Of a DNA stretch of 64,000 nucleotides, positions 16,288-59,500 are shown one piece after another. Within the stretch, counting starts at the first letter, position 1. Each line of letters starts with the position of its first letter. Made by a program: the position numbers and the translations under genes. The stretch spans positions 32,736,001-32,800,000 of the forward strand of contig CM060733.1 in NCBI GenBank assembly GCA_030704615.1, given 5' to 3'. Origin of the DNA: Takakia lepidozioides (lineage: Eukaryota > Plantae > Bryophyta). The notes below the pieces were generated by a model. The model worked only from the letters and a program-made list of their open reading frames with translations. It made no database searches and was not told the origin of the DNA.

Positions 16288-17620
16288 ATGGCGAAGACTA
16301 GGTCTAAGGTTGTTCCCCCGGAGGATGGTATGCTGGTTTTTTGGCACAAGCCTAAGAAAGGGGATGAGGTTCCTTTCTGGTATATGCCAACTGAGTGGGA
16401 GGAGATGATAGTGGAGGCAGAGGCAGACCTCAGAGTTCATGATGGCGCGAAACAAAGGAATCCCTATAAGTACAAGTTTTGTGGGCGGCCCATGAAGGAT
16501 AAGGTTAGGTTGAATAGGCATGTCATTGATGGGGAGGGTTATCTTTGGTTGAACATAGTGGATGGTTGGGACGAGGTTGAGTTGCCACTAAAACCTGGCC
16601 CGTTGCCGAGTTCCCGAAGCAGGTTACTCATTTTGTGGAGAGGTTGAGAGGGTGTACAAACCCCGAAGCGCGACGCGTACCAGGAGACGACGTGTCCCTT
16701 ACTGATCGGCAGCAGCAGCCCAAAGGGGCGAGAAAACAGAAGCCTGATGCGCCTGCACCTTCACAAGTGGCTGCCCTGCAAAGAGGAGTAGCTGTAGTGG
16801 GTCCGAAACCAATTTTGAACGCACCAAATCAAAGAAGGGGGCAAAAAAGGTTAAGATTGTTACTGGTTTACCCTCCGCCCGTGAGAGACAAGTCAAAGTG
16901 CAGCCTGAACTCGCTGTCACTTGGAGTAGAAAGCCAAAGAAAAAGTATCCCTATAGCCGTGAGCAGCCAGCAGCACAAATGGGGGGGAGTGAACATGGGG
17001 GGGATCGGTCTCAAAGTCAGGGGGGCTAGTCCGGAAAAGAGCAAAGACACGCACATGTGGGGGAGTAGAATACTCATGAGGTCGAGGGGGAGCAGACTAC
17101 TCATCAGGACGAGGGGGAGCAGTCTGCCAGCCCAGGGCCTCCTGCAGGGGATGGGGCCATGGACGTCGACGACAACACACCGCACCTGATCACTCCTCCT
17201 GGAACATTTATACTCCTGCAACATGGACTTCTCCCTTCCAATTTCGCTGACCAGAATGATGAAAGAAGCTGGGATGCATTTCTGAATTTCGCATGGAGTG
17301 GAGGGTTTGCAATGTGAGTGGAGAGGGCTGAACGCCGCTGGAGAAGATGGCTTCTACAAGAATAGGTTTGCTTCACCCCCCAATCTCATTTTCAGTTTAT
17401 GGCCATCTGCTCCTCCCAATATTTTCCTAGAATTCCCCCGGTTTGTAAATGTTGATTCTGTTTTGCATTTTTGCCTGCAGATTAATGCTTCCACGGGAGA
17501 AATTGAGGTTGTGCGGGCATGGAGCACTTACAAAGACGGCATTCCCTCCATTGGCCTGGAGTTGCAAGATTTTGAGAGCTACCTTGTGGGAAAGAAGAGT
17601 ACTCCATTCGTAACACCCTC
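16288..17620 (+). pseudogene. Degenerate element-encoded gene of unknown family (Zn-finger-like N-terminus + PGT..GLLPS domain)
   Basis: ATG 16288 (MAKTRSK...FWYMPTEWEEMIVEAEADLRV...KFCGRPMKDKVRLNRH); second domain at 17198-17353; frameshifts and stops; probable intron ~17366-17480; homologous to 55667-56587. Confidence 0.6.
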
Positions 17621-17623
17621 ATG

Positions 17624-20600
17624 TTCCATCAGCCGCTTGGTGGAAGCGATGGTCGCCAAGACTTGCAAGGTAGGCAACTACTCTTGTGAGTTGTATCAGG
17701 AAACTGGTGCCCTGCGTAAAGGGAGTTAGTTATTGTTCGTGAGTGGGATAATTTCCGGAACTAACGTGTCGTTGTTGGTGGACACAGGAACGTCGCACTC
17801 CTTCATGACACCGGCAACGGCACGGAAGCTGGGACTCCCGACAAGTGATGTGGGGGCCTCTATTGAGGTGCGTTGAGAACCACAATTGGCGACGAGGTTG
17901 GCGTTCGATGTTCCTCTTCAGCTCGGGAGTTGGAAGGGACGTGAGAACTTTACCATTTGCGAGATCGATGGAGTGGATCTCAATTTGGGGATGACATTTT
18001 TGAGCAGATCCGGAGTGGTCATAGATGGCAGCAAGAGAGTAGTCACACTACCGTGTGGGAATGGTGGCGAAGTTTTACGGGTGTCGGAAATGCCCAACCC
18101 CGTGGGAGGGCGAATAAACCTGCTATCAGCAAGGGAGTGGGCCGTGGAGGAGTTACACAAGCCCCAATTTTTGCTTTACGTAAGACAAGTGAAGGGAGAA
18201 GGCGATGGGGAGCCGAGCCCAGATTGGATCAAGGGGATTTTGGAGAAATACCAGGATGTGATGCCGGAGGATTTACCAAGCGGGTTGCCACCGCGAAGAG
18301 GAGTTGACCACAAGATTGAGGTGATACTGGGATCGGAGCCGCCTGCCAAGGCGCCCTACCGGTTGAGCCACAGAGAGTTGGTCGAGCTGAAGGCTCAGCT
18401 CAAGGATCTAATGTCAAAGGGGTATATCCGGCCGAGTAAGTCATCTTACGGAGCCCCGGTGCTATTCGCAGACGAGAAGAATGAGACGCTGCGGATGTGT
18501 GTCGATTACAGGGCCCTGAATAAGGTGACTATCATAACCGGTACCATTTTCCAAAGATCGACGACCTCTTCGATCGGTTGGCAGGAGCGAAGTATTTCAG
18601 CCGGATCAATTTGCGCTCCGGGTACCATCAGATCCGAGTGGCGGAAGGAGATGAGGAGAAGACCGCATGCAGGACAAGATATGGTTCGCATGAGTTCTTG
18701 GTGATGCATTTTGGGCTCACCAACGCACCCGCGACCTTTAGCACGCTAATGAACAGCCTTTTGCAGGAGTGGTTGGATGACTTTGTGATCGTATACATCG
18801 ACGACATATTGGTGTACTCGAAAACAAGGAAGAGCACATGGAGCACCTCAAAAGGGTGTTCCAGAAATTGCGGGAAGGGAAGCTGTAAGCCAAAGCTTCA
18901 AAATGCGAATTTGGGGTCACAAAAGTGGAGTTCCTGGGGCATGTGATTACACAGGATGATATCAAAATGGATGACAGAAAGGTGAGGGCGATCTTGGACT
19001 GGGAGCCTCCGACTTCGGTCCCGGGTTTGCGATCCTTCCTAGGACTCGCCTCTTATTACCGGAAGTATGTGAGAAATTTCGCCAAGATCGCGAAGCCGCT
19101 GTCAGACCTTCTGTGTAAATCCAAAGTCTGGGTATGGAACACCTTTTGTGGCCAAGCTTTTGCCAAGTTGAAGCAGCGGATCACGGAAGCTCCAGTCCTC
19201 AAAATCCCAGAGTTCGACCGTCCATTTGAGATTCATACGGATGCGTCGAACTTCGCAATAGGGGATGTACTCATGCAGGATGGACGTCTAGTGGCTTACG
19301 AAAGTAAGAAACTGAATGAAGTGGAGCGACGGTGGCCTATGCATGAGAAGGAAATGAAGGCGGTGGTGCATTGCCTTGAGCTTTGGCGCCACTATGTTGG
19401 TTCCAACCCGGTGAAGGTGTTCACCGACAATGTCACGGTGAAGTATTTTGCCACACAGCCTAAGTTGTCCCCAAAACAACTTAGGTGGCAAGATACTTTG
19501 GCGGTGTTCGACGTGGATATCCAGTACAAACCGGGACGGGACAATGTGGTGGCTGATGCTTTAAGTAGAAAGCAGCAGCTCATGTTGGTGTACAAGGGCG
19601 AGACGGCGCTCCAAAGGAAGATCCAGAAGGCTTACCGGAAGGATGAGATGGCGAAGTCCGTGATACGGGACTTGAGGATGGGGGTTAAATCACAGTTCCA
19701 CTTGCAAAATGGACTGCTCCGGTATAAGCAAAAACGTCTCTACGTGCCGAAGGGAGGGATCAGAGATAGTCTCTTGAGAGAATACCATGATGGCCCGCTT
19801 GCGAGCCACGGCGGAGCCAAGCGCACCGCGACACTCTTGAAGAAAGAGAAGTATTTCTGACCCAAACTGAGGAGGAGGCCGAGGAGTATGTCAAGACATG
19901 CACCACATGCCAACAAAACCAGAGCGAGTACAAAAAGCAAGTGGGGCTGTTACAACCCTTGCCGATTCCAGAGGGGTCTTGGGGAAGTGTCTCGATGGAT
20001 TTCATGACTGCTAAGCCGCTGTCAAATGATTCGATGCGATCATGGTGGTGGTGGATAGGTTCAGTAAAATGGGTCATTTCATCCCACCAAAGAGACGGCA
20101 ACGGCGCAGGAGACGGGGCGACTTACTTTCGTCCACGTCGTCAAGCATCATGGACTCCCGAAGGATATTGTCTGGGACCGCAATCCAAAGTTTACGAGTA
20201 AATTTTGGAAGGCACTTTAGAAGAAGATGGGGACGAGATCAGAGATGAGCACTGCCTTCCGACCTACGACCGACGGCCAAACGGAAAGAGTAAATTCTGT
20301 GGTGAAGCAGATCTTGCGGAATTACGTGTCGGCAGACCAATCAGACTGGGTGGAGCACTTGGACGCGGCAAAGTTCTGTTATAATAACACAAAACACTCC
20401 GCAACGGGAGTTTCCCCTTTCGTATTGGTCTATGGAAAGGCACCTCTGGTGCCGACAAGTTGGGCCGCCTAGGACGTTGAGGAACCGGCAGCAGCGGCGG
20501 TACTGGAAGAACGCGAGCGTTTATTGAAGCTCGCAAAGTACAACATTGCCAAAGCTAGGAAACGGTATGAACGACAGGCAAATCGGAAGTGGAGGGAAGT

Positions 20601-21240
20601 TAAGTTGAGACAGACATGGAGGTCTGGTTGAACATCAAGAATTTCCGACTACCTCCGGAAGTGAGTCCGAAGTTCGTACCTCCGTATGCGGGACCCTTTC
20701 GCATCCGGAAGGTTATGAATGAGGACGTATGTTGGAGCTGCCGGCAAACAGCAAGGTGTACCCGGTTTTCCACGTCTCCCTTTTGAAGCCTTACTTCAAA
20801 GATGAAGCGCGTCCGAATCGGCATCAAGTGTTGCTTCCGCCACCTGCGCTGTTGGATCATGAAGAGGTACAGCGCATGATCCAAGAGACCTTTCAGATCA
20901 TAGACAAACTTGAAACTGGAAATGGAGCAGAAGTGGAATTAGATGACCTAGATGTTCCCGGTGACACGAACATCCCACCAGAAGCCCATGACCCGGTTGC
21001 GGGTGGGGACTCTTACACTGATGAAGTACGAGGTGGAGGCAGTGCTTAAGTCGAGGAGGTTCAAGAATCGAGAAACGGAATATCTTGTGAAATGGAAGGG
21101 CTATCATCATGTGGAGGTATCTTGGGTGCGTGCCTCAGAAATGGGAAACGCATCCGAGGCGGTTGCAGCTTTCGAAGGGCGACCTCAAAAGCGGAAGAAA
21201 CGTTGATGGGGACATCGACCTCGGATCGTGGGGGAGGAAA
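17624..21240 (+). mobile_element. 5'-truncated Ty3/gypsy chromovirus pol pseudogene (PR-RT-RNaseH-IN-chromodomain)
   Basis: LVDTGTSHSF protease; RMCVDYRALN and VYIDDIL RT; IHTDAS RNase H; SMDF/VVDRFSK/DGQTERVN integrase; YAGPF; chromodomain YEVEAVL...YLVKWKGY...SW ending at 21206; PPT-like ggggaggaaa at 21231-21240; many frameshifts. Confidence 0.93.
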
Positions 21241-21990
21241 TGCATGCTTAGCCCGGCTTAGCTAGCTCAGGAATCCGATTGCAAAAACTTGTATTGTACA
21301 AATTTTGTTATAAATGAAATGGTTTCCAAATGTTGTGCGTCCTATTTTATTTGGAATGGTGATGCATGGTATGGTTGGCTAGTGTGTAGAATGCATGCTA
21401 GCTTACAAAAGTGGGAGAGGTAAATTGGATTAATCGTGTATTTGCGTAGTGCCGAAATCGGGTGATTCCCATCCAAGGGGCAATGAAACTTGCGCCTTCC
21501 TTGGGAGTTCACGTGCTAGTGCGCACCTGGCGCGTGCACGTACTATAACTGCACTACCGAGGGGGTTGCCTTGTAGTGCGGGCTAACGCGGAAGCTACGT
21601 GCTTCCGTTCACGTACTATAATCGTGTAGCCTCGGGACGAATTCGTAGTGCGGCTTCGGCGTGTTTCCGTACCTTAGGCCAACATTCCAAGGCAGACCCA
21701 ATTGTAGTGATTGGGCGCATGGTTAGTTCAAGGTTATCTTCCTAGTCAAAAAGGGTTCAAGGTGAACCTTTGCTCAAGGTGATGCTAAAAGCGGCATCAT
21801 GAGCGGTCGCAAGCAATGTTGTTGCAGTAAGGCCATTCGATCCTCGTGGAGGATCGTTCCTTGGCCTTGGAGTAGGCCAAGAAGAGTGCACTGGGAGGAG
21901 CTTGAGAGGCTCCACCCTTGGCCGGGACTTGGAGGAAGTCGGCCGAATTAGCTAGTGGAGAGTAGAGTCAAATGTGGAGTTTGGTTCTTT
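21241..21990 (+). mobile_element. Probable 3' LTR (partial) of the upstream chromovirus
   Basis: Starts TG directly after the PPT; internal cacgtactataa repeats; no partner copy in the window, so the end is undefined. Confidence 0.45.
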
Positions 21991-22110
21991 GCTATGGGAC
22001 GCCATGGTGCGGAAACAAACTCCTTGATGTGGGACACCACAACTTGGATGTTCGTTTCTACAAAATGGACAAGTCGATGAGGACATCGACTCCCTATTGG
22101 TAGGGGTGTG

Positions 22111-22637
22111 TGTCGCGGCCCTTTGCCTGGAGGACAGGGGGTCAGGACGCAGAGGGGCTGCCCCTGTGGTGGGGGCGGTGGCAGCAATAGGTACGGGGGG
22201 CTGAAGCACCCTTGAGTGCCTTGGGCACTCAAGGAGGCGGAGGCGCTCACTAGGTGGAGCCCCGCACACCGGGTTGCGGTGGGGGTGGCTCCACAAGGGG
22301 TGGTGGTAGCTTAGTGGGACTTAGTGGGGATGGCATAGGACTCACCATGGGGCGGAGACCTTATGGTGGGAGTCGTGGGGAGTCTTGGGACCCATCACGG
22401 TCCAATGGGGCCATGGTGGGTGGGCCAAGACTCACCACGACTCATCACCGGGAGTCGGGGGTCTTCGTGGTGGTTCGCCATAAAATGGTAGGGTTATTTG
22501 TGAAACCCCCACGGACAGTCACAGAAGTATATATAGGGAGTAGTAACCCCGAGAACGGTGCAAGCCCGTTGGTGACCAAAAACTAGTGAGTAAGCGAGCG
22601 AGCCGGAAAGCGACCAAGGAGTGGGAGCTATTCCAGA
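22111..22637 (+). mobile_element. LTR of the TGTCGC...GCGACA family, 5' part (3' LTR preceded by a PPT-like tract)
   Basis: Near-identical to 60164-60727 and 61377-61826; preceded by gaggacatcgac...ggtaggggtgtg; TATA-like gtatatatag at ~22527; remainder lies inverted at 29051-29230. Confidence 0.88.
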
Positions 22638-25329
22638 ACAGCAGGGACGTGGGATGGAGGCTTTGGAGACCTATGAGCAAATGATGGGGGAAGGGGTCCA
22701 GCCCGGCCACATTATGTTTGTATGCATTGCAGGCCTGGCAGCCCTGGAGAAGGGCAAAGAGGTGCATGGGGATATCATCAAAGCTGGATTGTACCTAATG
22801 TCATTCGAAACACTGCCCTGGCAGTTCTATGGTGACACCTTAAGAGCTAGAATTGTACCAAATGTCATTTTGAACAATACCCTGGTGGACATGTATGCAA
22901 AATGTGGGTGCATCGAGGATGCAAAGGGAATGTTCAACACTATAGCTGAACAAAATGTGGTGTCGTGGAGTGCGATGCTTGCAGGGTATGCAAAGCGGGG
23001 ACATGGGATGGAGGCTTTGGAGACCTATGAGCAACTGATGGGGGAAGGGTCCAGCCCGGCCACATCATGTTTGTAAGCATTGTAGGCCTGGCAGCCCTGG
23101 AGAAGGGCAAAGAGGTGCATTTGGATATCATCAAAGCTGGAATTGTACTGCCCTGGCAGCTCTCGAAAAGGGGAAGGAGGTCCATGGTGACACCTTCAGA
23201 GCTGGAATTGTACCAATTGTCATTTTGAACAATACCCTAGTGGATATGTAGGCAAAATGTGGGTGCATCGGGGATGCAAAGGGAGTTCAACACTATGGCT
23301 GAACGAGATGTGGTGTCGTGGAGTGCGATGCTTGCAGGGTATGCACGGCAGGGACGTGGGATGGAGGCTTTGGAGACCTATGAGCAAATGATAGGGGAAG
23401 AGGTCCAGCCCAGCCACATCATGTTTGTATGCATTGTAGGCCTGGCAGCCCTGGAGAATGATAAAGAGGTGCATGGGGATATCATCAAAGCTGGAATTGT
23501 ACCTAATGTCATTCCATACACTGCCCTGGCAGCTTTGGAAAAGGGGAAGGAGGTCCGTGGTGACATCTTCAGAGCTGGAATTGTACCAAATGTCATTTTG
23601 AACAATACCCTAGTGGACATGTATGCAAAATGTGGGTGCATCGGGGATGCAAAGGGAGTGTTCAACACTATGGCTAAACGAGATGTGGTGTCGTGGAGTG
23701 CGATGCTTGCAGGGTATGCACAACAGAGACGTGGGATGGAGGCTTTGGAGACCTATGAGCAACTGAAGGGGGAAGGGGTCCAGCCCGGCCACATCATGTT
23801 TGTATGCATTGCAAGCCTGGCAGCCCTGGAGAAGGGCAAAGAGGTGCATTTGGATATCATCAAAGCTGGAATTGTACCTAATGTTATTTGAAACACTGCC
23901 CTAGCAGCTCTCGAAAAGGGGAAGGAGGTCCATGGTGACACCTTCAGAGCTGGAATTGTACCAATTGTCATTTTGAACAATACCCTAGTGGATATGTATG
24001 CAAAATGTGGGTGCATCGGGGATGCAAAGGGAGTGTTCAACACACTATGGCTGAACGAGATGTGGTGTCGTGGAGTGCGATGCTTGCAGGGTATGCACAG
24101 CAGGGACGTGGGATGGAGGCTTTCGAGACCTATGAGCAAATGATGGGGGAAGGGGTTCAGCCCGGCCACATCATGTTTGTATGCATTGCAGGCCTGGCAG
24201 CCGTGGAGAAGGGCAAATAGGTGCATGGGGATATCATCAAAGCTGGAATTGTACCTAATGTCATTCAAAACACTGCCCTGGCAGCTCTGGAAAAGGGGAA
24301 GGAGGTCCATGGTGACACCTTTAGAGCTGGAATTGTACCAAATGTCATTTTGAACAATACCCTAGTGGACATGTATGCAAAATGTGGGTGCATCGGGGAT
24401 GCAAAGGGAGTGTTCAACACTATGGCTGAACGAGATGTGGTGTCATGGAGTGCGATGCTTGCAGGGTATGCACAGCAAGGACGTAGGATGGAGGCTTTGG
24501 AGACCTATGAGCAAATGATGGGGGGAGGGGTTCAGCCCGGCCACATCATGTTTGTATGCATTGCAGGCCTGGCAACCCTGGAGAAGGGCACAGAGGTGCA
24601 TGGGGATATCATCAAAGCTGGAATTGTACCTAATGTCATTCGAAACACTGCCCTGGCAGCTCTGGAAAAGGGGAAGGAGGTCCATGGTGACACCTTTAGA
24701 GCTGGAATTGTACCAAATGTCATTTTGAACAATACCCTAATGGACATGTATGCAAAATGCGGGTGCATTGAGGATGCAAAGGGAATGTTCAACACTATGG
24801 CTGAACGAGATGTGGTGTCGTGGGAGTGCGATGCTTGCAGGGTATGCAACACGGCACGGGACGTGGGATGGAGGCTTTGGAGACTATGAGCAAATGAGGG
24901 GAAGAGGTCCATCCCAGCCACATCATGTTTGTATGCATTGTAGGCCTGGCAGCCCTGGAGAAGGATAGAGTGCATGGGGATATCATCAAAGCTGGAATTG
25001 TACCTAATGTCATTCCATACACTGCCCTGGCAGCTTTGGAAAAGGGGAAGGAGGTCCGTGGTGACATCTTCAGAGCTGGAATTGTACCAAATGTCATTTT
25101 GAACAATACCCTAGTGGACATGTATGCAAAATGTGGTGCATCGGGGATGCAAAGGGAGTGTTTCAACACTATGGCTAAACGAGATGTGGTGTCGTGGAGT
25201 GCGATGCTTGCAGGTATGCACAACAGGGACGTGGGATGGAGGCTTTGAGAGACCTATGAGCAAATGATGGGGGAAGGGGTTCAGCCCGGCCACATCATGT
25301 TTGTGTGCATTGCAGGCCTGGCAGCCCTG
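22638..25329 (+). repeat. PLS-class PPR tandem array, + arm (~7-8 monomers of ~350-375 bp), pseudogenic
   Basis: Repeating DVVSWSAMLAGYAQQGRGMEALETYEQM / ALEKGKEVHGDIIKAGIVP / NTLVDMYAKCGCIGDAKGVF; 375-bp period (23291 to 23666); stops and frameshifts. Confidence 0.93.
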
Positions 25330-25409
25330 ATTTAAATCAGGCACCTCAACCATACCACAGCTTCTAAAGAGGATCAAGAGAGGGAGTCCATAATGCCTCT
25401 TCTTGCTCT

Positions 25410-25995
25410 AAGGGGCATGTGAAGATGCTTTGTGAGGCAAGCAGACTGAAAGAGGCTCTACAACCTTTAAACCAAGGAGCATTTCAGTCACATTATCCAA
25501 AGTGGATTCACACCAAGTGTTTTTCTCCTCAACCCCCTTGTGAACATGTATGTTAAGTGCAGGAGCATCATGAATGCACACCGAGTGTTCAACGGAACTT
25601 TGATCACGTTGAATATAATGTTGGCAGGATTTAACATAGGTGTGGTAGGAATGCTTGGAGACCTATGAGCAACTGCTGCGCGAAGGGGTGAAGCCCAACC
25701 ACATCACATTTGTTTGTAATGCATGTGCAAGCCTGGGAGCTCTGGAAAATGGCAAAGAGGTCCATGGTGACATCGTCAAATCTGGAATTGTACCCAATTG
25801 CATTCTGAACACTGCCCTGGTGGACTGCATGTATGCCAAATGTGGGTGCATCGAGGATGCAAATGAAGTGTTTGACAGTATGGCTGAACGAGATGTGGTG
25901 TCGTGGAGTGCAATGATTGCAGGATATGCACAACAAGGGCGTGGATGGAGGCTTTGGAGACCTATGAGCAATGATGCGGGAAGGGGTGATTCCCC
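25410..25995 (+). pseudogene. N-terminal fragment of a PLS-PPR gene, less derived relative of the array monomer
   Basis: MLCEASRLKEA, NPLVNMYVKC, ETYEQLLREGVKPNHITFVCNACASLGALENGKEVH, MYAKCGCIEDANEVFDSMAERDVVSWSAMIAGY; frameshifted; no E/DYW domain seen. Confidence 0.82.
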
Positions 25996-26599
25996 GTGGA
26001 AAAATAGCTCCAAGAACCTGCATGGTAGATGGTCAACTGGAAGCCGCAGCAACAGCGGCACAATTGATAAAATCAGGCAATGCTAATCAAGGCACCTTCT
26101 TCAACCCATTTCACTCTGTTTTCCCCTCTTATCAGAATCGCCCTAAATTTTCATGTTTGAAGAATTCTCTGCAAATTAGGTGGTTGAGTGAACCTTTGAT
26201 AGTTTGGAGTGACTTTGACATGATACTGCCAAAGTGACAATAGGAAAGTATCCAGAAACGTGTAACAGAGATGAGGAGAAGCTGTGGAATGAATGCTTTT
26301 CTGACCGCAGTCAAGGGTGGGACAACCGAGGGAAAAATATGAATGTCTATTAGATTACAGAGAGTAGGAGACGCAACTCAGCATAGACACTAAGGCAAAC
26401 TCTCCTACCCTGCAAAGGGTGTGTTTTGGTATCTGTGCGAATAAATATAATTTCTAAAAACATAATTTCAATATTTTATTATTTAATAATGTTCTCATCC
26501 AGGCCACTGTCCATATTTCCTATAATAATAATAATAATAATAATTAAATCCATTAATATTCAAACTTAATATTGGAAAGCAAATAATAATTAATTAATG

Positions 26600-27019: not shown

Positions 27020-27804
27020 ACCCCTACCGGTATGGATACGCCGTGTAGTCCAAGCCCATGTTTTTCTGAGCATAGTGTTGAGGATACAGATGTAATTCAT
27101 TTGTCTACTCCCCCACTCATTGAGATCAGCTTCATTTCATGGCATGAAGGCATATGGAAATCATTATCGAGTGGATGACACAGAGAGTCGTCTTCTTATC
27201 TCTTTTGATTCTGGAGTTGCATCCGTCTTCCAGCAATAGATCGAGCAGAAATAGTGTGCGTGATAGAAATCCAGTCATGTCACCATTAGAGTACGTTGGG
27301 GTCATCAAAGAGATCTTCAAATTGGATTATGGACGAGTGCACCCCATTGTATTTCGTTGTGCTTGGGTGAGGGCCAACCTCGTTGGACAAAATGCTACAA
27401 TGAAGCGGGATTCGTATGGTTTTCTACTTGCAAATTTTGGGAGAATGTTACCCGCCAATGATCAACCGTTCATCTTTCCATCTCAAGTTGAACATGTGTT
27501 CTTTTTGGATGAGTCCCCAAGTTCGGAATGGAAGGTAGTCCTTCGGAAGGATCCAAGAGCAAAAAAGATTGTGGCGGACATAGATCAATGTGACATTGGA
27601 GAAAATGCAGATTTCGATGGCCTTCAGGCACCGTCCACCTTATCAGATCAGCCAATACTTAGGTCATTAGATGGTGCCATGGCTCTAAATAAAGAAGACC
27701 TGACTATGTTGGCTACCATTCAAGCGGCGTTTGTGCAACCAACCGCTATTCCAGTTGAGCAAAGTGATTCAGAGGGTGACGAATATGTTTCAGATTCAGA
27801 ATAA
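27020..27804 (+). pseudogene. C-terminal part of CACTA TnpD transposase (DUF4216-like), displaced by inversion
   Basis: AYGNHYRVDD; EYVGVIKEIFKLDY...VFRCAWV...DSYGF...DQPFIFPSQVEHVFF...WKVVL; joins in frame to 35791 (-). Confidence 0.85.
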
Positions 27805-27829
27805 AGTTTATTGTTGGAACCATTTGTTC

Positions 27830-28458: not shown

Positions 28459-29050
28459 ATATCTAAGCTGTCCTTCTGCCAGGAGCACTTCTTTCAACAT
28501 ACTTTCATGATTCTGAAAATTCCCAAACGTCCGCCAACCTCCATGCAAGAAGAGTCCAAATCCATAATATGGCAGTTGGTGAGCAGTCTGTGGTGCAAAA
28601 AACATCATGATGTGACTGGGGCAGATGCCGTGCCTTAAATTGGCCAAAGGGTACAAGTGTGATACAGGGGGTCGAGGGTCTATGGTAGAAAAAACTTGGA
28701 GGGGAACAGGAAGGCAGTCGGGCTGGACATTGACGTTTCAGCCAGGAGACAATCAGATCCCTCGGCAGTTCTCAGGAGAGGCAGTTCTCAGGAGAGGGAA
28801 TTCAGGAAGCAGCCGTCGAACATCCTGCTCCTCCAGCAATAGTTCAACAATATCAAACTAGGGATCTAGAGATGAGGGGGGAGCAGAAGAGGAAGGAGCA
28901 GCAGAGGGGGGAGAAGACCTGAAAGAAGTCAGGGGACCAGAAGAGGGAGGAACAAACAAAGGGGGAAATGAGGTGGGGGAACCTGAGATGGGGGTAGACG
29001 ATGGAGGGGGAGCAGAGACAAGCATGATGGGGGGAACAACATTCACCGGA

Positions 29051-29230
29051 TGTCGCACACCTCACTTCGGTAAGCTCCCCTTCAAGTCATAGTTACTCGT
29101 TTGATGCGCGCGTCTAACTCCCAACCTGGCCGCCGGGCCAACTCGGAGCTTCGGCTGCTCACCGGGACATAACAATCCCCCTTTACTCTTCCAAAAGACT
29201 CTCCACCAATTTGGGCCTAGTGAAATTCCC
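29051..29230 (-). mobile_element. 3' end of the TGTCGC-family LTR (inverted piece)
   Basis: Matches 62239-62418; the - strand ends ...gaggtgtgcgaca, the inverted partner of the TGTCGC start. Confidence 0.85.
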
Positions 29231-40023: not shown

Positions 40024-41525
40024 AAGACAGGCACCATTATTTGGATTGGAAACCTTACTCTGAGATGATCAAGGGCAGGGCTTGCATACACCATCCATTT
40101 GTTCTCCTTTGTACCAATTTAGTTTAGATACACCGAGTTTGGTATATTTTGCCTCCATTATTATTAGTTTGATGGGCTTATGGGTTTTCTGCATTTGAAT
40201 GCAAAGGAACAACTCACCTGGGCCAAGTATGAAACTCAGTTGTTTGTATTGAGTACTTGTGGTTATACTACCTCTACCCTTGCTGGAGACAGGAAAAGGT
40301 TGAAAAGGAAATGAATTCGAACAGCTGGAGCATAAAGCAAGTGGGACACCTCCAGCAATTGCAAATTCATATGTCATGAGTCCTGATGTGACAGTTGGAT
40401 TCAATCAAACATGCCAGCTCTATACTATCCCTCAGCTCAATACAAGAATATCCCAATCCTCCAAATAATTTAAATTATTCTTCACTCCAGGAACAGTTTA
40501 CATGAGGTTTGTTTGTGCACACCTGCAGCACCGCCTTTTTGCAGAGAGAGATGTAGCAGAGAGCTACTGAGTTAACTCACTAGAATCTTGCCAGCGAGCT
40601 GCAGGGCTGGGCCCATGCTCCATTTCACAATTCCTGTCTATGACTTTGTGCCAACTCGACAGGTGGGTTTAGATGTCTGGACTGTAGGCGGTCAAGAGGT
40701 CTTAGTTGATGAGTCAACTTAACCTCGTCCTACCAGGTGGTCATTTCCAGAACATTCCAGAAGAACGCTGATGCTTTGACTTGAATCACAGCAATGTGAA
40801 TACAAACTGGAGAGAGTAAGGAATTGGTAAAAATCAAAGGGCAAGCTACCGTTGACAACCTGATTCTGAATCTGTTGTGCTGGTTCTCCCTTTGCTGGGG
40901 ACGCATGAAGCTAAACTCAATTTGAATAAGCAACCGGATTCAACTCCCAGACAAAGAGCTAAGAGATAAATAGTTAAGGGCTGATGTGATGAAGCAGGGA
41001 GTCACAAGCATATCAAAAATACAAGAGATTGGAGCATACTTTGATCTGCTCAGTACGTCCTAAGATTGTGTGCCGCTCGTCTGCTGTGACTCAAGCATTG
41101 CCTCTAGATTATTTAGTCATAGAGCTCGGCACAGAGAGATGCACATATCTTAAAAATTTGAACCAACATTCAGGTTAAGACTGAGGAAACTAGGACATCA
41201 ACTATATTCATTTTGACATCACATGTGACATTCAATTGACCTGCACCCAAAAGTTCTGAGCAGGAAAGCAATCTACTTTCCAGTATCCTGTTGAGGAGAG
41301 CAGCAAAAACCAGAATTGCACAAGACAAAACATTATGTACCGGATTAGGCTATGCCATAAAGCGCAATTGAAATCAATGAAATAACGATATTCAGATGAT
41401 GCAAAGGAACTTACAATGCTCCAAAGATCAAGACTGCATTCATTTCAGGACTGCCTGCATCAACAACAAGGATGCAGCAATTCCACAAGAAAATCCTTAC
41501 AATTCCCTCCAAGTATAGTATACAT

Positions 41526-48400: not shown

Positions 48401-51400
48401 GGGGTGTATTCATAACCATCCACAACAAAACCCGCAAACCCCCGAACAACTTCATCTGGGTCAACTCAATGCGACCAAAAGATCGTAGGGTAAAATTCGT
48501 ATATCATACCAAAGGGCTATCAAACCTGGTTTCCGGTCCAGGCCCTCCATACCCTTCCAATGACCTTTAACCTTCACTCCTGGAACATTAGGGGCCTTGG
48601 ATCAGACCCTTCCTCTCTCAAAAGGCTAAGAATCAAAACTTGGATGGCTCCCTTCCTCTCTGGTGACTCTATAATATTTCTACAGGAACACAAGCTAGAC
48701 CAGACCAAAATCGACAACCTTTCAGACTATCTATGGCCCATAACAAACTCTCTTTGGAAACCAACCTCTTCAGGCACCAAAGGAGGGACAGCGATATTAT
48801 TATCACCCTCTTTACAACCCTTTCTCGCAGATGGATACCATTGCGATGAAGACACTTACAAAACTTATATCCAAGCCAGGAACAATCTAGACATTCACCA
48901 TAAAATCCAGGAAAGAAAGTGGAAGTTACAGGCGGGGGTTAATTGGTCAACAAAAGGGGAAAAGATGACAAAATACTTCTTTGACAAGACCAGATTGAGA
49001 AGAGCTTCACAGACCATCTCTGAACTTGTGGCCCAGCCATCCGGGATCTCAAACACAACACCTAAATCGATGGCAACCCAGGTTGGGGACCATTTCCAGC
49101 AACTTTTTCACAGTGACAGCATCTCCCTAAAACCATCTAATGAACAGACAGCCTGTCTGATTCACACTCCTACCATGCTTTCTCCCGAATATGCCGCGCA
49201 GCTTGAGGGAGACTTCTCTGACTTGGAACTAGAGGAAGCTCTATCCAAGATGCAGAACAACAAATCGCCTGGTATAGATGGCATTTCTATTGAATTTTAT
49301 AAAGCATTGTGGCCAGAGATTTCAGGGGACTTCACAGCCATGACCAACCATCTGTTTCAGCAAGGTCAAATGCCACCTTCAATGGCTCAAGGGGTAATTA
49401 CCTTGTTGTACAAAAAGGGGGACAGAACGAATATTTCGATTTATCACCCTATAACCCTTCTGAATGTCGCCTACAAAATCATTGCCAAGGCTCTCGCCCT
49501 TAGACTTCAACCTCTTCTTCCATTCATTATTCGGCCCAACCGGACAGGATTTATTAAAGGCCGGTATATTCTGGACAACCTCCTCCTTGCACAGGAAATC
49601 CTAGACTATGCCCTAAGGACCAATCAAGCCATTGCCCTTCTTCTCTTGGATTTTGAAAAGGCATTCGAACGGGTGGAATGGTCCTACTTGCTTGCAGCCT
49701 TGGTAAAATTTGGCTTCCCTCATTCTTTTTGTAAATGGATCAAGATTCTCCTTACTTCTTCATCCAGTAGGGTTACTGTAAATGGCCACTTGTCTTCTTC
49801 CTTCCCTCTTCGGCGATCAGTTAGACAGGGATGTCCCCTCTCACCCTTTCTGTTTCTAGTAGTGGCAGATACCCTGGGGTATATGTTGCAGCAAAACCAA
49901 TTCATAACAGGCCTTAGGGTCTCAAACTATATAACGGGCCAATACACCCACTTGACTGACTCTATGTTCGTGGATAACACTTTTTTAATGTTGCATGCAA
50001 AGTCAGAAAACTTGGACCAAGCAGGACAGACTCTGCATACCTTTTGCAAAGCCTCGGGATTCAAAATTAATTGGAACAAAACTTCAGGCTTGCTCATTGA
50101 TGATCTAACAGCTTCCACTATGGGCTCCCCACCCTCTTGGGGGGTGGATCAGGGTCTCAGTTGGCTCCAGCCTGGCGAAACAACCACCTTGTTAGGATAT
50201 ACCTTTGGTATCAACCTCACAGACCAGCAAATCTTTGCCTCTACATTATCCAAACTAAAGAAAAAATTGACCTACTGGGGGTCAAAACATCTATCTCTCG
50301 TTGGTAGAGCCTTAGTGGTGAATCAGATTCATTCAGCTGGTTTATGGTACTATGCCTCCTTATGGCGCCCTAACTCTAAACAGATGCAAGTAATGAGACG
50401 TCTCCTCCGGAACTTCATCTGGGGAGCAGAAACCTCCATTCACAACAAGAGACCACAGGTAGCTTGGTTACAGATCTGTTTACCAAAAAAAAAGGAGGGC
50501 TAGGGGTGTTGGACCCTGAACTACAGATAGTGGCCCTCCTTGGAAAATGGATACCGCGCTTTCTTGGACCAGAAGGAGGTTGCTGGAAATTTTTGGTCTA
50601 TGACCACATTGCCAATTCCTCGCCACTCAAAAATACCCCATGGACCCCATCATTGCGCTGGATCACTCAAGGCTTCAACCTTCAATCTGTGAGTTCCACT
50701 CTATGGTCCAATATCTGGTTGGCTTGGGGAAGGCTCAGAAACTGCTCACAAAAGCCCAGCCAAGCAACTTCTATGAAATCAAAAGACAACATCTGTTTCT
50801 CAATGACATACCTCTAACTGCTCCTCAGAAAAACCAGGCTATGAGATGGTCCAAATGGGACTGCCTCGGGGTTAGACAGGTTCATAACTTATGGTCGGGA
50901 GATAGTCTCATCTCTCAAGATGCGCTGGCCCTTTTGTGTGGGGAGGTCCCGTGCATCAAAAGGTTACCATGATATCATTCAAACTATCCCACCACAGTGG
51001 CTGGCCACTTTGGCACTTGGCCCTCCGGAGCCAGCTCCCAACTCATGGGCTTTAGTCATTTTGCAAAACAAGCTTACCATTCTATTTCTAGATGCACTCA
51101 GTCACAATGATATGTCAGTATACACCTTCTCTATTGACACTTTCTCTCTTAGGCTTACACTTACAAACCCAAAACCCAGTTCACTTGAATCTCATGACTC
51201 TAACGCCGGTGAGGATATGCTGCTGGACAGCCCCAGATAAAGCCATGGACCCTATACCACCCCTTACAACCACAACCAAATCCTGGCTTCTTTCTAACAC
51301 CTTTGTCTGGATTCTGGGTAGACCTCTCGCAGAAATGGACATTGACCCCCAAGAATGGTCCTGGAAATTCAACAATGCTCCAGAGCCCTTCTTTGCGTAC

Positions 51401-51720: not shown

Positions 51721-51756
51721 CCCGTGAAGGTCACATTCGGAAGTAGATAAAGATGA

Positions 51757-53586: not shown

Positions 53587-56500
53587 TCTCATTTTATAAT
53601 AATAGCGAGTTGAATGCAAGCGTGCGAGCTAACAACACGGTCGCGCCCGGACGAGGGGCGCTCCCCCCCCCCCCCACCCCCCCCCCCCCCCCCCGCAGCT
53701 GTGCGCAGTCTCCCACACCCGCATGTGCCGCGGCGGCTGCAACAACCGCGGCCCCCCGCGGCTGGACCGCCCGGGGTCCGTCGCACGGCCGGTCCGCTGC
53801 GGCAAGTCTGCCGGGGAGGTATGCTTTGCGGTCTGCTCTGCCATGCGCCAGCGGACTGCCATCCAGTCCACTGCCGGCGTCAAATCGGGGCCGTCCATCC
53901 GAGAGCCCATCCTGGCCCTCCAATCTAGGGCGCCATGCCACCGCTCATTTGCGGATTGCCATCAACATGTCTCTTTTTTTTGTCCGAAACTGCGGCAGGT
54001 GTGCGCGGGAGGCGTTGCCTTCCACAGTGTTGTTCTCTTTGTGTTTTCGTGATCTTGAAGGTTCCGAGAGGAGTGGCAGCCCTACAGCCCCCATCGTGCA
54101 TATGCTTCCACTATTTTCGTCATCTTTTTGTGCTGCAAGACCTGTTCTTGGCGATTAAATTGTACATATCATTCGTTTGGGCCACTTGGTTGGGTCCCTA
54201 TGAATGGCAAATGAGGGGGCTCTTTCCAATGAGCGAACTGATTAAACATGCATGCCTAAACATGTCATTAGTAAACATTGCTTTATGGTGCTCTTAAATT
54301 TAATAGTATTCATGGTGTGCTGGAAGCATCCGTCAGTCACTTCACCTCTTCAATCCGCAACGGTAACCATGGGCAAGATGATAGCAAAAATCGCCGGAGC
54401 ATAACATGAGGGCGTGTAAACATTGCAGATTCCATATCCAGCGATGGAACTGCTAGATTTTCTTTTTGTAGTTAGTGATAGTGAGTCTTCCTCAATTATG
54501 TATTTTGGGTTGTGTTATCGTGAGTCTGTTGAACCAAGTCCTGATTTCGACCATGGGCCTCCTTGTACATATATGCGCAAATTGTGGGTCCGTTGGAGTA
54601 TGTTTTCGTGAACCTGTTGTGCGAAACAGTTTCATTATGGATGTGAAGCCAACACGTGTGTGTTCGAGCTTTACGTCTCTGAGTCTGTTGTCCTGTCAAT
54701 CTTTTGGCCTCTCATTTGGTTTGTTTGTTGCACCGTCAGTGTAGACTGTCGGCAGTCTATGCGCGGATAGTCTGCTCTTTCTTATGCACCGTCAGTCTGC
54801 CTGCAGTCTATTCATCCATCGGTAGTCTGCTCTGTCTGTGCTAGTGTAGTCTACTGGCAGTCTGTTGCAGATGGCGACCGAACTATCAGTCTGTTGACCA
54901 GCCAGTCTGTTCACCGACCGTGTGCTCTCTCTTGCAGTCAATCCGTTGATCGTCAATCTGTTCCTCCGGCGGACTGTTGAGAACTAAGGGCATTCGGTTA
55001 CAACGATGGGCGGTGTTTTCGGCTGTCAGCCTGTTGTGCCGACTGTGGGGAGTCTGTTATGCCGTTCATGTCTAGCACGCAGTCTGTCTCAGATGTTGGC
55101 TGAAGACGCAACCTGTACCCGAGGTCTGTTGCACCTGAGGTCTGGTGGACACGAGGTCTGCTGCACCTCCGGTCTGCTGGCTGGGAGTCTGGTAGACCGT
55201 CGGATCCAGCGGACCTTTTAAATGTCGTGACGGCGGTGACGGCCTCAATGAATGCTCGCCACTTCGAGCCGGTGAGACTGCATGTCCGGTCTGGTGTCTG
55301 CGTGGCCTCCAACTTCGCCTTCCCGCCTTCTCACCATTTGTCTGAACGTCCGTCTTTCTTGCGCGCACAGATGTGGACTATCCTGTAGTCCCAACCGTCA
55401 TGCACACCGTTGCTCCCGTTGCGCTCGTAGGCAGTTGTGTTCGTCATCCTTGTCATTATCTCCCTCTCTTCTCTTTCTGTCCTCGTTCTTTCTCCTCGCA
55501 GGGAGTCGTTTGTAATCGTTCTTTGTAGTCCTCTTTGCAGTTTGTTCTTCGCAGTCCTTCTTGCAGGTCTTCTGTGTTGTAAGAGGCGATGGAGGATGCT
55601 TGCGTGAAGGGTGGACCGAACTGGATGGAGTTTGTGCACATGACGCGGTTGAAGAAATTGCGAAGATACTAGTACTCACCAATGGAGTACAATCGTAAAA
55701 TAGTGGAAGCATGTGTGGATCTGAAGGTTGCAAGGTCGAAAAACCCTGAATAAGAAGGAGAGGCTCAAGTGTCCTTTTTGTGAGGAGAACATAAAGGACA
55801 AAATCCAGTTAAACTGGCATTGTGTGGACACGGGATGCAAGGCCACCATTCCTCCTGATTTCAAGCCCTGGTCCATACCAGTGTCACAGAAAGCACGAGA
55901 CAACGCTGTTTTCAGAACCCACGGCGCAAACCCAGTCCCTCGAAGTTATGAAGAATTGCGCCAACGGTACTGGCGGGCTGTTGGAAGGGTGGCTGGAACG
56001 GGTTTGGAGGAAGTGCCTCCCCGCAAGCGAAATTTCAGTGATGGGGCCGCAAAGAAGGCCCAAGCAAAAGTGCAAGGTCTGCTCGCAATGCAAGCATGGC
56101 TTCCCAGCCGGGGGGTCCGTCCCAAATGCGGCTGCCCCGAAGGTCCCGGCAGACTATACCCATCAGTGACTCAAGTGAGTTTGCCCATGTTCCCACCCAG
56201 CGGTATGCTGGCTCAACAAAGAATGTCATCCGCAACAATGACTTTGAAGGGCAAGGTCCGCTATCCAGTGTAGTGGATATTGAGTTGTATGAGAGGACTA
56301 ACATGGACATGCACATAGACAGCCTGGACGACAACACCTCCCTAGCCCACACCGTCCAGGAGACCGAGCAGTGTCTTCTCGGATCTGGGCAGACTGACTC
56401 TGTGCAACCACAGACCGAGGGACCAGTCTGCCCGGGAACGTTGCACCTAATTCCATTTGGGGTTCTCCCATCGGTCTACCCGCCGCAAGACGATTCAGAT

Positions 56501-59500
56501 TTCTTCCCATTTTTCTTCAGATTTGTGCAAACCGGTCGGATGGCCGTAACCATTGTTGAGGCTGAATAGAATTGGTTGAAATCCCTTGAATGTCCTGACG
56601 ATGATGACAACATACAACACGAGGTAATGTTGAAGACTTGCTGCTGTTGTCCGCTGGTCAGTCTTCTGGTCTGTCATGTATGTCCTACCGCTGATCGATC
56701 CTATGTCTGTCTAATGGAGTAGTCTGATGGTGTTGGTGAGCCCTGTGGTCTGTCATGTATGTGTTCTGGTCATGAGCTCTCTGGTCTGTCATGCATGTAT
56801 GCTGCCCTTTAATTGGGTGAAGCCGGCAGACCTCTTGTAGTCGCAGTCTGCTGGAGAAAACATCACTTCAGCAGAATGAACAGTACAACCTTCACTGAAA
56901 GACGGAGTCAGGTCTGTTGAGGATTGGGAGACAGGCTTCGGCCAGCGTCGTTAGCACATACGGTGTGCTGGCTCTGTATGAACCGATCTACTCGGTCTGT
57001 TCAATACCGGTCTTTTGCGCCGGGTCTGTTGGATCCAGTACTGAAATTTTGTGTCGCGTGCTTGTTCAGACTATTATCGTTCGAGAGTCTATTCGGAGAG
57101 ACATATCAGCTTGGCGGATACGCAGCATGGACCTTCCTTTACAACTCACAGCCTTGCGGCTTTGAAGTGGAGCAGGTTCGCGAGTACATTCTGTTCAAAT
57201 ATCCCAGGTCTTCACCCGCCATACATGAACTTGAGACGGAGCCTGCCCCAGCCCCCCAACAGACCCCTGACCTTGCCTCAGCAGACCACATCAAGAGACC
57301 GCATCAGACTACAGTACACCAAAGCCCTCAGCAAACCTCAACAGACCGCTTCAGACAACACAAGGCCTCAGCACACAGCACCGGATGTTGGCAGACTTGA
57401 GCATACCTCCTCGGTTGTGGGAGCACAGCATACCGTGGGCATGGAAGTCACTGAAGACTATGTCCATTTCCCCTCCAGCGTGGGGATATTTGGGGTGTGG
57501 AGATCGCCATTACCGGTTGCGCCTCTCCAAGGTGAAAATCATACACTTCCCCATTTCAGGGTTGGTGATTCAAGTGCCCATGTGGACTGGTATAGTGACC
57601 TGCACCACATTGTAATAGACCGGTGTTGGGCCTTTGTCCCTTTTCACTATTCCATGGAGTAAAGCTTGCTGTTACTTTTTGGGAGATCCAAACGCCACTC
57701 CTTGTCCAGCTAATTCTAATGGATGACCCGCGACCGCAGGAGATTCGTCATATGCCCATGGCACACCCTACGGTCGGGGTCCGCAAAAAGCACTTGTCGG
57801 CAATTTCAGCAGAGCATTTTGACATAATGACATGTACCTTCCTCCAACATCGATGGATGCAGTTCGGTAATTTCACATCATACAAGAAATTGCTAAAAGA
57901 CCTGCCCACACTTTGTATAGACTTGTTGCATGGTTCCCCGCAGGCACGAGAATCTGTTATGGATGAGGCGTTGTTATGGTTCTCCTTGGTAATGGAGCGA
58001 GTTGTGCTTGACATTGTGTTGCGCCAACCACATATCGTTCGAATTCTGTGGTCTGGAACACCACGAGATGGCCCTTGCCCATCTGGATTGTGCACTGCTG
58101 GACCTGACAAATAAAAGATATTGGACTCGTTGGTAATCTCCTCGAAGGTAACCAGATTTTTATCCGGTGCTTTACTTTCTTGCTGCACTACTTTCCAAAC
58201 GCACTACACATGTGTTCTGATACATTTTTGCGGTTTCATGCAGGGCGGCCTGAGGGTCCGCAAAATGATGTCCTCAATGCATTCGACTCCCTTGCCAGGG
58301 TTGCGCGAGAGGTTGTTCAGGCCGTGCAAGGTCGTAAAGCATCGGGGTATGTCGGGAAGGCTGGGCAGGTCCAGCAGACTACCGTTGAGTCTGCTGGCCA
58401 TCGTATGGATCAACCGAGCCCGGAGCATGATGTGCACGGGACTGCGTGGCAGAAGACTGACCCCAGGACTGGGAATGAGACTCAGCATGAGACTCTTCAG
58501 GCTACTCTCCAAGATACTGCTCAGCAGACCATCGACGATCACACTGGCAAAAACAATGACGGGCAGATTGCCATGGAGGAATCGTAGCAGACCGCAGGGC
58601 AATGCTCAGAGCAGACTTGGAAGCACAATTCCCATCAGACCATAGAGCAAACCGCACAGCCCACCTTCAAGCATAGTTCGCAGCAGACCTCACAGCGGGA
58701 CCAGCCGCCGTCTATGTTTCTCATCCAGTCTGTTGTGACGGTTCAGTGGTACGACCCGCAATGGCGTGCAGAGCATTTTTTGCAATACAGACGCATATCC
58801 CAAGCCCAACCAAATTTTTTTTCGTCTGCGAACCCCATGTTGATAATGTCGGAGTCCACTTTACCTACTATGACATTTGAGGTTAGTCCCCAGCTAGTTC
58901 GTTCACTAGCAAAAGCCATCGATGAATTTGACGTGACCGAACATAACTATAGGCCAGTAAACCGAATAATAGACCTTACAGCCAAATCTAATGAGGACGG
59001 ACCATCAACGACTGCCAGTCTGTTATGTCGGAATGCTCAGTCTGTTATGTCAGACGACCCTCACATCACTCTTGATGAAGTTGATAGTCTGCTGGAGTAC
59101 CTACAAGACCAAAACCAACGTGTGGCGGAGCAGGACAGACAGTAGACTGACACAACTGCCCATGACACTGCTCAAGAGACTTTGGACAAGACTGCCGCTC
59201 ACATCACAGCCCGGCGAGACTGTGAACTATACAGCCCAGGAGACTGCTCCAAACACTGCCGTGCAGACTGTGGACGATAGTGTCCAGCGTACTTGCACAC
59301 AGGCTGCCCAGCAGACTGTCAATGCCCCTCTGTTATGCCAGGGTACTAACTGCAATGTTGCCCAACAGACTGCGCATGGAGGTGTCGAGGAGACTGGCCA
59401 GAAGACTGCAGTGGTTGCGAAAGAGGACAATGCCGATATCCCAGAGTCTGGGCAGGAGACTGCCGAGCACACTCCACCACCGACTGCCTAGCCAACTGCA

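Follow-up and report, generated by a model that had tools for sequence, protein, structure and literature searches.

A family of two-domain proteins with a C2H2-like finger, encoded beside element-specific word arrays in diverged mobile elements

Two pseudogenes and an uninterrupted relative

The window, i.e. the whole stretch of 64,000 nucleotides analysed here, contains two diverged copies of a gene for a two-domain protein. Their features, described with reference to a third family member (P0005, see below), are as follows.

16288-17353, plus strand: pseudogenic copy 1 of the gene, its domains 1 and 2 lying in frames 1 and 2, respectively
16465-16533, plus strand: finger of copy 1, degenerate, first and last Cys lost (alignment with P0005 and copy 2)
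17198-17353, plus strand: domain 2 of copy 1 (tblastx 18/52; z = 12.6 and 13.8 against shuffles)
55589-56587, plus strand: pseudogenic copy 2 of the gene, with its ATG at 55589
55755-55850, plus strand: finger of copy 2, full C-x2-C-x12-H-x5-C pattern
56432-56587, plus strand: domain 2 of copy 2 (tblastn, tblastx, shuffles)

Copy 1 is interrupted by in-frame stops at 17027, 17066 and 17315. In some other genomic copies a single C is inserted after 16593 and another after 16773, which would unite the two domains of copy 1 in one frame. At 55670 copy 2 has a stop in place of the W of other members; its reading frame shifts in domain 1 (55750-55767) and again between 56096 and 56273, and a further stop follows at 56567.

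Translation of the window returned the peptides of both copies where the preliminary description had placed them, and its proposal that the two copies encode the same protein was borne out by tblastn, tblastx, shuffled controls and P0005 alike. When copy 1 was used as tblastn query against the whole window, the best non-self matches were the copy-2 sites, namely 55673-55747 and 55767-55829 for domain 1 (E 1.4e-4) and 56432-56548 for domain 2 (E 0.02). Both domains are collinear in the two copies, with a spacing of 817 versus 759 nt. The ungapped domain-2 alignment described earlier was reproduced by tblastx, which found 18 of 52 residues identical (34.6%) between 17198-17353 and 56432-56587. 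Smith-Waterman scores were compared with those of 2000 shuffles, none of which matched the observed score; the halves of domain 1 scored z = 7.1 and 7.4 and domain 2 z = 12.6, placing the alignment of the window copies well above chance (z 7-13). As the copies are approx. 35% identical at the protein level and show no DNA similarity, their synonymous sites are saturated.

An exhaustive HMMER search with domain 1 through 1.84 billion (1.84e9) representative proteins revealed a sole true relative, P0005, and no longer protein carrying domain 1. P0005 comprises 300 amino acids and is encoded by L001, a 1.5-kb third element from a public sequencing run. Compared with copy 1, its domain 1 reached z = 22 and its domain 2 z = 13.8. 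It contains domains 1 and 2 in order within one uninterrupted ORF, showing a real protein family of approx. 300-350 amino acids. Chance similarity of copies 1 and 2 was ruled out by the shuffles together with this third member. By their alignments, the three sequences are one homologous, selected protein family of this size encoded by diverged mobile elements, in line with the earlier assumption of past selection on an element-encoded factor in which no domain but the finger is recognised. The known members number three, two of them pseudogenes.

Searches for described relatives agreed with the description of the protein as unrecognised. Pfam returned only sub-threshold finger matches for the two domains, P0005 and the linker ORFs. 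A word-indexed protein search with domain 1, P0005 or a profile returned nothing new, and neither the 5.8e9 nor the 1.84e9 proteins searched yielded a homologue of host type. The ESM Atlas feature search was uninformative and the metagenome scans were blank. Stop-interrupted proteins entered the searches as separate open pieces.

At the N-terminus of the protein lies a domain that contains a single C2H2-like (C2HC) finger; a long, disordered, basic and fast-evolving linker connects it to a short C-terminal domain (domain 2) of approx. 45 residues. The N-terminal domain spans approx. 85 residues, to which we assign a beta-hairpin, a helix and the single zinc finger. The C-x2-C-x12-H-x5-C finger noted in the preliminary description is intact in copy 2 and does not extend to the whole family, as copy 1 is without the first and last Cys and P0005 follows C-x2-C-x12-H-x7-C. 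Compared with Pfam, the finger matched zf-Di19 (E 0.005), zf-C2H2_4 (0.024) and zf-C2H2 (0.23), all below the curated cut-offs; among PDB sequences it matched ZNF224, CTCF and ZFP57 (E 0.03-1). These matches to C2H2 DNA-binding fingers in Pfam, PDB sequences and Foldseek are weak but consistent and suggest that the finger is of the DNA-binding type. With classical C2H2 fingers (zf-C2H2 and zf-Di19; CTCF, ZFAT) it shares the C-x2-C-x12-H spacing, a predicted beta-beta-alpha fold and a conserved Leu at helix position 4. In contrast to these, it is single and embedded in a larger conserved N-terminal domain, and its fourth ligand is a Cys at +5 or +7 instead of a His at +3 to +5. Multi-finger C2H2 proteins found by HMMER matched only the finger part of the domain-1 query. 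Positions 2, 3 and 6 of the finger helix differ among the three subfamilies in the alignment. An AF2 model of P0005, built from a small alignment, was poor (mean pLDDT 49), and with this model Foldseek against the PDB and an Atlas shape search gave no significant match.

A Mutator-like element with probable nested insertions

A large element, element 1, contains copy 1 just within one of its ends and is delimited by the following features.

14975-14983: left target-site duplication AAGACAGAC, directly outside the repeats, 8/9 match to 40024-40032
14984-40023: element 1, 25 kb, holding copy 1 just inside one end, with terminal inverted repeats of approx. 1 kb and a 9-bp target duplication
14984-16236, plus strand: left terminal inverted repeat, containing 416-bp tandem repeats, with tandem families D16 and D18 inside
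39275-40023, minus strand: right terminal inverted repeat, inverse partner of the left repeat
40024-40032: right target-site duplication AAGACAGGC, directly outside the right repeat

By blastn, the left repeat is 80-84% identical to the inverted stretch 40021-39275, and the first approx. 75 nt reach approx. 92%; the end sequences are CGGTCCCAAT and CCGTCCCAAT. The 8/9 match of the target duplication has a probability of approx. 1e-4 for a single register, and in other genomic copies the flanking sequence becomes different at 14982-14984. Between 14900 and 17600 the contig depth is many times that of single contigs; element 1 is multicopy. Mutator-like elements (MULEs) are defined by target duplications of 8-11 bp and terminal inverted repeats of often hundreds of bp (PMC6446971), and element 1 has both a 9-bp duplication and long terminal inverted repeats. 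Assigned from its ends alone, element 1 is Mutator-like and not CACTA. Its repeats are longer than most described MULE repeats.

The interior of element 1 holds a gypsy fragment, PPR arrays and CACTA pieces. No MULE/SWIM domain of a MURA-type DDE transposase was found in those of its ORFs that were run against Pfam, the other listed ORFs having been read by eye, and neither element of the window contains a Mutator transposase. This copy of element 1 is at best non-autonomous or gutted. For the element around copy 2, no terminal repeat or target duplication was found.

For the adjoining Ty3/gypsy and TNP2 genes, nested insertion is the best explanation. Gypsy homology begins abruptly at approx. 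17614-17624, where the depth jumps from approx. 300 to approx. 1e5. Upstream of this junction, typical gypsy copies and the copy at 62484 have a different sequence, and no LTR was found before the copy-1 ORF. The gypsy next to copy 1 is a 5′-truncated nested copy of a hugely abundant family, and a link of the two-domain gene with the adjacent Ty3/gypsy genes is not supported. Copy 1 as a gag-like ORF of the adjoining gypsy, whose PR-RT genes lie directly downstream of it, was excluded by the sharp junction and the depth jump. In RNA-like runs of the organism, coverage was confined to the gypsy part.

Affiliation with CACTA elements had also been considered, the two-domain protein then being a TnpA-like second protein of a CACTA/EnSpm element. 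TnpA binds subterminal repeats, and a TNP2 gene does lie within the same inverted-repeat-bounded element: Transposase_21 (E 5e-61) and DUF4218 occupy 36453-38506 on the minus strand, approx. 470 nt inside the right repeat. However, only a truncated form of this gene is present, adjoining a CACTA-type end (TAGTG near 35790), and a DUF4216 piece at 27154-27801 lies on the opposite strand, indicating nested CACTA elements. Moreover, neither the copy-2 element nor L001 contains TNP2. Identity with a CACTA TnpA was rejected on the long non-CACTA ends of element 1 and its target duplication of 9 instead of 3 bp, so that this affiliation retains very little probability.

Private words around the gene

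All three genes (3/3) share one layout, in which a dense array of a short word is followed by a CT-rich leader, the ATG and, past the ORF, more of the word; in copies 1 and 2 the CT-rich leader lies directly upstream. The words are GATCCC in element 1, a GTCTG-type word around copy 2 and GGGTTAC/GTAACCC in L001, which codes for P0005 and is painted with TGTAACCC; they are mutually exclusive. Measured against dinucleotide shuffles of the same stretch, each word is far in excess in non-coding DNA, and the ORFs are free of it. In the window, the arrays are as follows.

15254-16210, plus strand: polar GATCCC array, 14 forward and 0 reversed (shuffle mean 3.8, maximum 11)
54400-55400, plus strand: polar GTCTG-type array upstream of copy 2, 16 forward and 0 reversed (shuffle mean 1.4, maximum 6)
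56600-59800: non-coding DNA downstream of copy 2, rich in the word, with 19 forward and 18 reversed copies (shuffle means 2.2 and 3.4)

In element 1 the words sit inside the terminal repeats. The array of copy 1 grew via the 416-bp tandem repeats, its ORF has 0 forward copies of GATCCC, and the right repeat contains the reversed word GGGATC ten times (shuffle mean 1.9, maximum 6). The window background of the GTCTG-type word is approx. 0.3 per kb. Downstream of copy 2, a stretch from 57600 to 58300 is free of words; here the words occur in both orientations and form no clean inverted array. In L001 the ORF of P0005 ends in a stop and a reversed word array begins at the ORF end. The three elements have no mutual DNA similarity, yet the whole gene occupies the same position behind array and leader.

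Three further explanations bear on this layout. The words could be binding sites of the transposase, with the two-domain protein being a Mutator accessory protein that has another role, like MURB or VANB. MULE transposases such as MURA bind sites in their terminal repeats, which is where the words of copy 1 lie, and a 2026 preprint reports that the AtMu1 transposase alone is sufficient for sequence-specific activation of cognate copies. However, the arrays of L001 and copy 2 surround the two-domain gene with no transposase between them, and it is the two-domain protein that has a finger of the DNA-binding type. Moreover, the words and helix positions 2, 3 and 6 both vary among the subfamilies. 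We consider transposase binding an unlikely explanation of the words.

Alternatively, the ORF might be an exon for the DNA-binding N-terminus of a larger transposase gene, and the copies internal-deletion derivatives that keep only the ends. DNA transposons that have suffered deletions usually retain their first exon, the nested gypsy cuts copy 1 at approx. 17614, and most contigs related to copy 1 diverge near 17500. A donor-like GT after domain 2 had been noted as well, which found no support as an intron, as P0005 reads through and weak similarity extends beyond the stops. In addition, a stop closes the ORF of P0005 at the point where the reversed word array sets in, the exhaustive search revealed no longer protein with domain 1, no remnant of a catalytic domain follows copy 2, and the same part would need to have been lost in three independent lineages. 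We consider an exon of a transposase improbable.

The least probable explanation is that a host gene or gene fragment was captured by transposons as Pack-MULE-like cargo without function for the element. Host-sequence capture is frequent in MULEs (PMC6446971) and all window copies are dead. Against this, the whole gene is found in the same place in three DNA-dissimilar elements with different words, and no homologue of host type was found in the protein libraries named above.

A candidate reader of the element's own words

We propose, at a probability of about 0.5, that the protein is an accessory DNA-binding protein that reads the words of its own element, analogous to VANC and TnpA and unrelated to them in sequence. 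Its gene would be an accessory (non-transposase) gene of a Mutator-like TIR transposon lineage in a seed-free land plant. The word-array context fits the guess of a repeat-binding or anti-silencing factor made in the preliminary description. According to this proposal, the gene would be read inward from just inside one element end, behind the word array and CT-rich leader, and the finger domain would recognise the element's own word. Many copies of the protein could load onto the dense arrays, with domain 2 possibly mediating self-association or recruiting a partner, and this loading would mark the non-coding DNA of the element as 'self'. As a consequence, silencing might be countered or promoters activated, as VANC does, or the ends might be assembled for transposition, a role that TnpA, MURB or mutB may have. 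Joint diversification of protein and word would then give three subfamilies with three words. One zinc finger reads approx. 3 bp. A single finger is too small for a word of 6-9 nt unless the rest of domain 1 or oligomers add contacts.

The closest functional likeness is to VANC. In the non-coding DNA of the MULE that encodes VANC21, a 9-nt word bound by this protein is arrayed densely and in one orientation; the targets evolve through tandem repeats, and VANC21 itself combines conserved domains with variable regions (PMC5735166). The present system likewise combines an accessory gene of a Mutator-like element, a dense and family-specific word in largely one orientation in the element's non-coding DNA, arrays growing by tandem repeats, related subfamilies with different words, and a protein with conserved domains plus variable regions. 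This resemblance is functional and does not imply membership. VANC is a relative of MAIN/plant-mobile-domain proteins and was reported as dicot-specific (PMC13547354), whereas the present protein has a C2H2-like finger and belongs to no Pfam family; no sequence relationship was found, and Pfam returned no plant mobile domain at E up to 1. Furthermore, binding and loss of methylation were demonstrated for VANC, while the present protein is known from its sequence.

Extra ORFs are common in MULEs, including a C2H2 ORF in Spectre elements (PMC6446971). Like that ORF, mudrB of maize MuDR and the DNA-binding mutB of yeast Mutyl, the two-domain gene is a small additional ORF that accompanies or replaces a transposase gene, in an element whose terminal repeats are long and whose target duplication falls within 8-11 bp (PMC6446971). 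Those ORFs were compared by description only; no homology of the two-domain protein to anything in the protein libraries was detected, and the present copies are without a transposase gene. In MuDR, a gene starts just inside the terminal repeat and reads inward, as here. With TnpA of En/Spm the protein would share the role of an element-encoded binder of short subterminal repeats that are oppositely oriented at the two ends. The ends and duplication of element 1 are non-CACTA, no sequence similarity to TnpA was found, and the globular domain of TnpA was reported as an NDX-B-like beta-barrel and not a zinc finger (PMC13547354).

If the protein does not read the words, the result is a modest one, a new orphan family of transposon ORFs. 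If it does, this would be a second, unrelated family with the genomic signature of VANC, now in a seed-free plant, the signature being private words on non-coding DNA, arrays that expand through tandem repeats, and a word that differs from one sister subfamily to another. To our knowledge, very few transposon accessory proteins are understood, and VANC is the one clear transposon-encoded sequence-specific anti-silencing factor. To paint oneself with a word and encode its reader would then suggest itself as a recurrent strategy of DNA transposons, and three natural protein/word pairs would be at hand for the co-evolution of DNA-binding specificity and targets. A more far-reaching and tentative idea, which we hold to be possible rather than probable, is that seed-free plants independently evolved a zinc-finger counterpart of the Arabidopsis VANC system. 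Here a small protein encoded by a Mutator element would recognise a short, self-amplified word covering that element and so protect or activate it, and protein and word may switch together and thereby give rise to new subfamilies. Under this idea, three pairs of word and protein can already be seen.

Homology of the two copies and a third member of the family

The genes at 16288-17353 (copy 1) and 55589-56587 (copy 2), both on the plus strand, had been described as diverged versions of the same two-domain protein with no obvious similarity at the DNA level. The peptides quoted for both copies are present at the positions given, and the 18/52 identity between 17198-17353 and 56432-56587 was reproduced by tblastx. 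In a tblastn search of the whole window with copy 1, domain 1 matched 55673-55747 and 55767-55829 (sum E 1.4e-4) and domain 2 matched 56432-56548 (E 0.02). These sites in copy 2 were the top non-self matches of copy 1, with conserved order and similar spacing. The observed local alignment scores were reached by none of 2000 shuffles (z = 7.1 and 7.4 for the two halves of domain 1, 12.6 for domain 2), and comparison of the two loci revealed no DNA-level similarity.

A word-indexed protein search with domain 1 gave no match. When 1.84 billion representatives were searched exhaustively with HMMER, seven matches resulted, among which the only true relative was P0005, a protein of 300 aa from public sequencing data encoded on a 1.5-kb DNA (L001). 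Five of the seven were multi-finger C2H2 proteins covering query residues 46-81 only, and the repetitive P0007 (835 aa) was not accepted as a relative. P0005 and copy 1 align over residues 7-81 (z = 22), and domain 2 lies near the C-terminus of P0005, scoring z = 13.8 with that of copy 1 and z = 16.5 with that of copy 2. As both are contained in P0005, the two "domains" are, judged from sequence, the conserved ends of one single-exon protein. Neither a search of 5.8 billion proteins with P0005 and a profile nor two metagenome scans produced a further relative. The proposal that the domains lack a well-described family thus held, with one true relative found by HMMER and no Pfam family covering any part of the protein. 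We conclude that this transposon protein family is real and was previously unannotated.

In part of the same-organism read contigs aligned to copy 1, an extra C follows position 16593 and another follows 16773. The two shifts would carry the frame from domain 1 via an open stretch in frame 3 to domain 2, consistent with one protein. Copy 1 is further interrupted by stops at 17027, 17066 and 17315. In copy 2, two frameshifts are accompanied by stops at 55670, a position at which the other members encode Trp, and at 56567. By their sequences, both copies are dead.

Domain 1 (about 85 residues) is predicted to form a beta-hairpin, a long helix and a beta-beta-alpha finger (pLDDT 60-77). The finger pattern C-x2-C-x12-H-x5-C of the preliminary description applies to copy 2 and is degenerate in copy 1; P0005 carries C-x2-C-x12-H-x7-C. 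Pfam finger matches were sub-threshold only (zf-Di19, E 0.005; zf-C2H2_4, E 0.024), and PDB sequence and Foldseek searches gave weak matches to C2H2 fingers that bind DNA, among them those of ZNF224, CTCF and ZFP57. The alignment revealed a conserved finger helix, D-K-x-[RQ]-L-N-[RW]-H, with variation at positions 2, 3 and 6, which canonically contact bases; a specificity code read from a single finger would be speculation. Between the domains, a basic linker of about 130-170 residues is unalignable and predicted to be disordered, and domain 2 (about 45 residues) comprises one helix and a short strand.

Ends and class of element 1

Copy 1 resides in element 1 (14984-40023), which is bounded by inverted repeats (14984-16236 and 40023-39275) of 80-92% identity. 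AAGACAGAC and AAGACAGGC directly flank these terminal repeats as a 9-bp duplication (8/9 match, P ~1e-4). Other genomic copies have different flanking sequence, diverging at 14982-14984, and read depth over the end of the element indicates a multicopy family. Mutator-like elements (MULEs) are defined by long terminal repeats and duplications of 8-11 bp, and often carry extra ORFs (PMC6446971). Judged by its ends, element 1 is Mutator-like; no Mutator transposase was found in the interior among the ORFs run through Pfam or the other listed ORFs read by eye. CACTA identity was rejected on the non-CACTA terminal repeats and the 9-bp duplication, and gypsy identity on the sharp junction and depth jump at about 17614-17624. 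Element 2, the older element carrying copy 2, yielded no definable ends. Long poly-C runs (15390-15430 and 15826-15850), at which read contigs break, lie inside the left terminal repeat of element 1 and may limit its assembly accuracy.

Word arrays and a putative word-reading protein

A common layout was observed in 3/3 elements: a dense array of a short element-specific word, a CT-rich leader, an ATG, the ORF and more words past the ORF.

Words around the ORFs, with expected counts from dinucleotide shuffles
Copy 1, GATCCC, before the ORF (15254-16210): 14 forward, 0 reversed; shuffle mean 3.8
Copy 1, GATCCC, beyond the ORF (39276-39796): 10 reversed; shuffle mean 1.9
Copy 2, GTCTG-type, before the ORF (54400-55400): 16 forward, 0 reversed; shuffle mean 1.4
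Copy 2, GTCTG-type, beyond the ORF (56600-59800): 37 in both orientations; shuffle means 2.2 forward, 3.4 reversed
L001, GGGTTAC / GTAACCC: 6 forward before the ORF, 9 reversed beyond; shuffle means 0.05 and 0.3

The words, including TGTAACCC flanking the P0005 gene in L001, are mutually exclusive among the three elements, and each ORF is free of its own word. A conserved, element-borne, finger-containing protein family is thus associated with private, ORF-avoiding word arrays. This is suggestive of a putative word-reader: the protein would bind the words of its own element, and high-density loading might protect or activate the element or, alternatively, help in assembling its ends. In the main rival explanation, the words would be read by the transposase, with another role for the two-domain protein.

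The closest worked example for the proposed word-reading is VANC21, the anti-silencing protein of Arabidopsis MULEs, which binds a 9-nt word arrayed densely and in one orientation in its own MULE's non-coding DNA and whose targets evolve by tandem repeats (PMC5735166). The copy 1 array has grown via 416-bp tandem repeats. As VANC is a MAIN/plant-mobile-domain relative reported to be dicot-specific (PMC13547354), the finger family would be an analogue rather than a member. It probably belongs with the accessory DNA-binding proteins of Mutator-like elements as a new variant.

Nested and neighbouring sequences

Features in and around element 1
17614-21300 and 62484-64000, plus strand: Ty3/gypsy PR-RT-RH-INT-chromo, two copies, 91% identical
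22638-26100 (plus) and 29229-34565 (minus): PPR-derived (PLS-type) inverted arrays of 350-375-nt units, arms up to 98% identical
27154-27801, plus strand: DUF4216 CACTA piece
36453-38506, minus strand: Transposase_21 (E 5e-61) and DUF4218, CACTA transposase pieces

The chromovirus inside element 1 is 5′-truncated. Its homology begins at about 17614-17624, where depth rises about 300-fold, from a few hundred in neighbouring DNA to about 1e5 summed contig depth, and typical gypsy copies, including that at 62484, have other sequence upstream of this junction. The Ty3/gypsy element is among the most abundant repeats of the genome, and this enormous abundance explains why both gene copies lie near the same family. 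The CACTA pieces, on both strands, adjoin a CACTA-type end (TAGTG) near 35790 and are probably nested in the Mutator-like element, whose interior also holds the PPR-derived arrays.

A 450-530-nt module occurs in three copies of about 91% identity (22106-22637, 60159-60692 and 61377-61826), one directly adjoining a PPR array and two adjoining a minus-strand gag-like piece with a degenerate CCHC knuckle (61663-62234). A further piece is common to 29050-29230 and 62238-62418. Module and piece may derive from the LTR or leader of the gypsy family.

A coding stretch for a cytosolic HSP70 (41526-43253, minus strand, 575 aa open) looks intact and lies 1.5 kb past the right end of element 1, placing the 25-kb element close to a host gene. 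A LINE-like retroelement (46101-50503, plus strand) contains a CCHC-knuckle ORF followed by a 647-aa ORF with, by appearance, endonuclease and reverse transcriptase. Host-gene exons at 1396-4936 (plus strand) resemble USP39/Sad1-type zf-UBP in ORF translations judged by eye.
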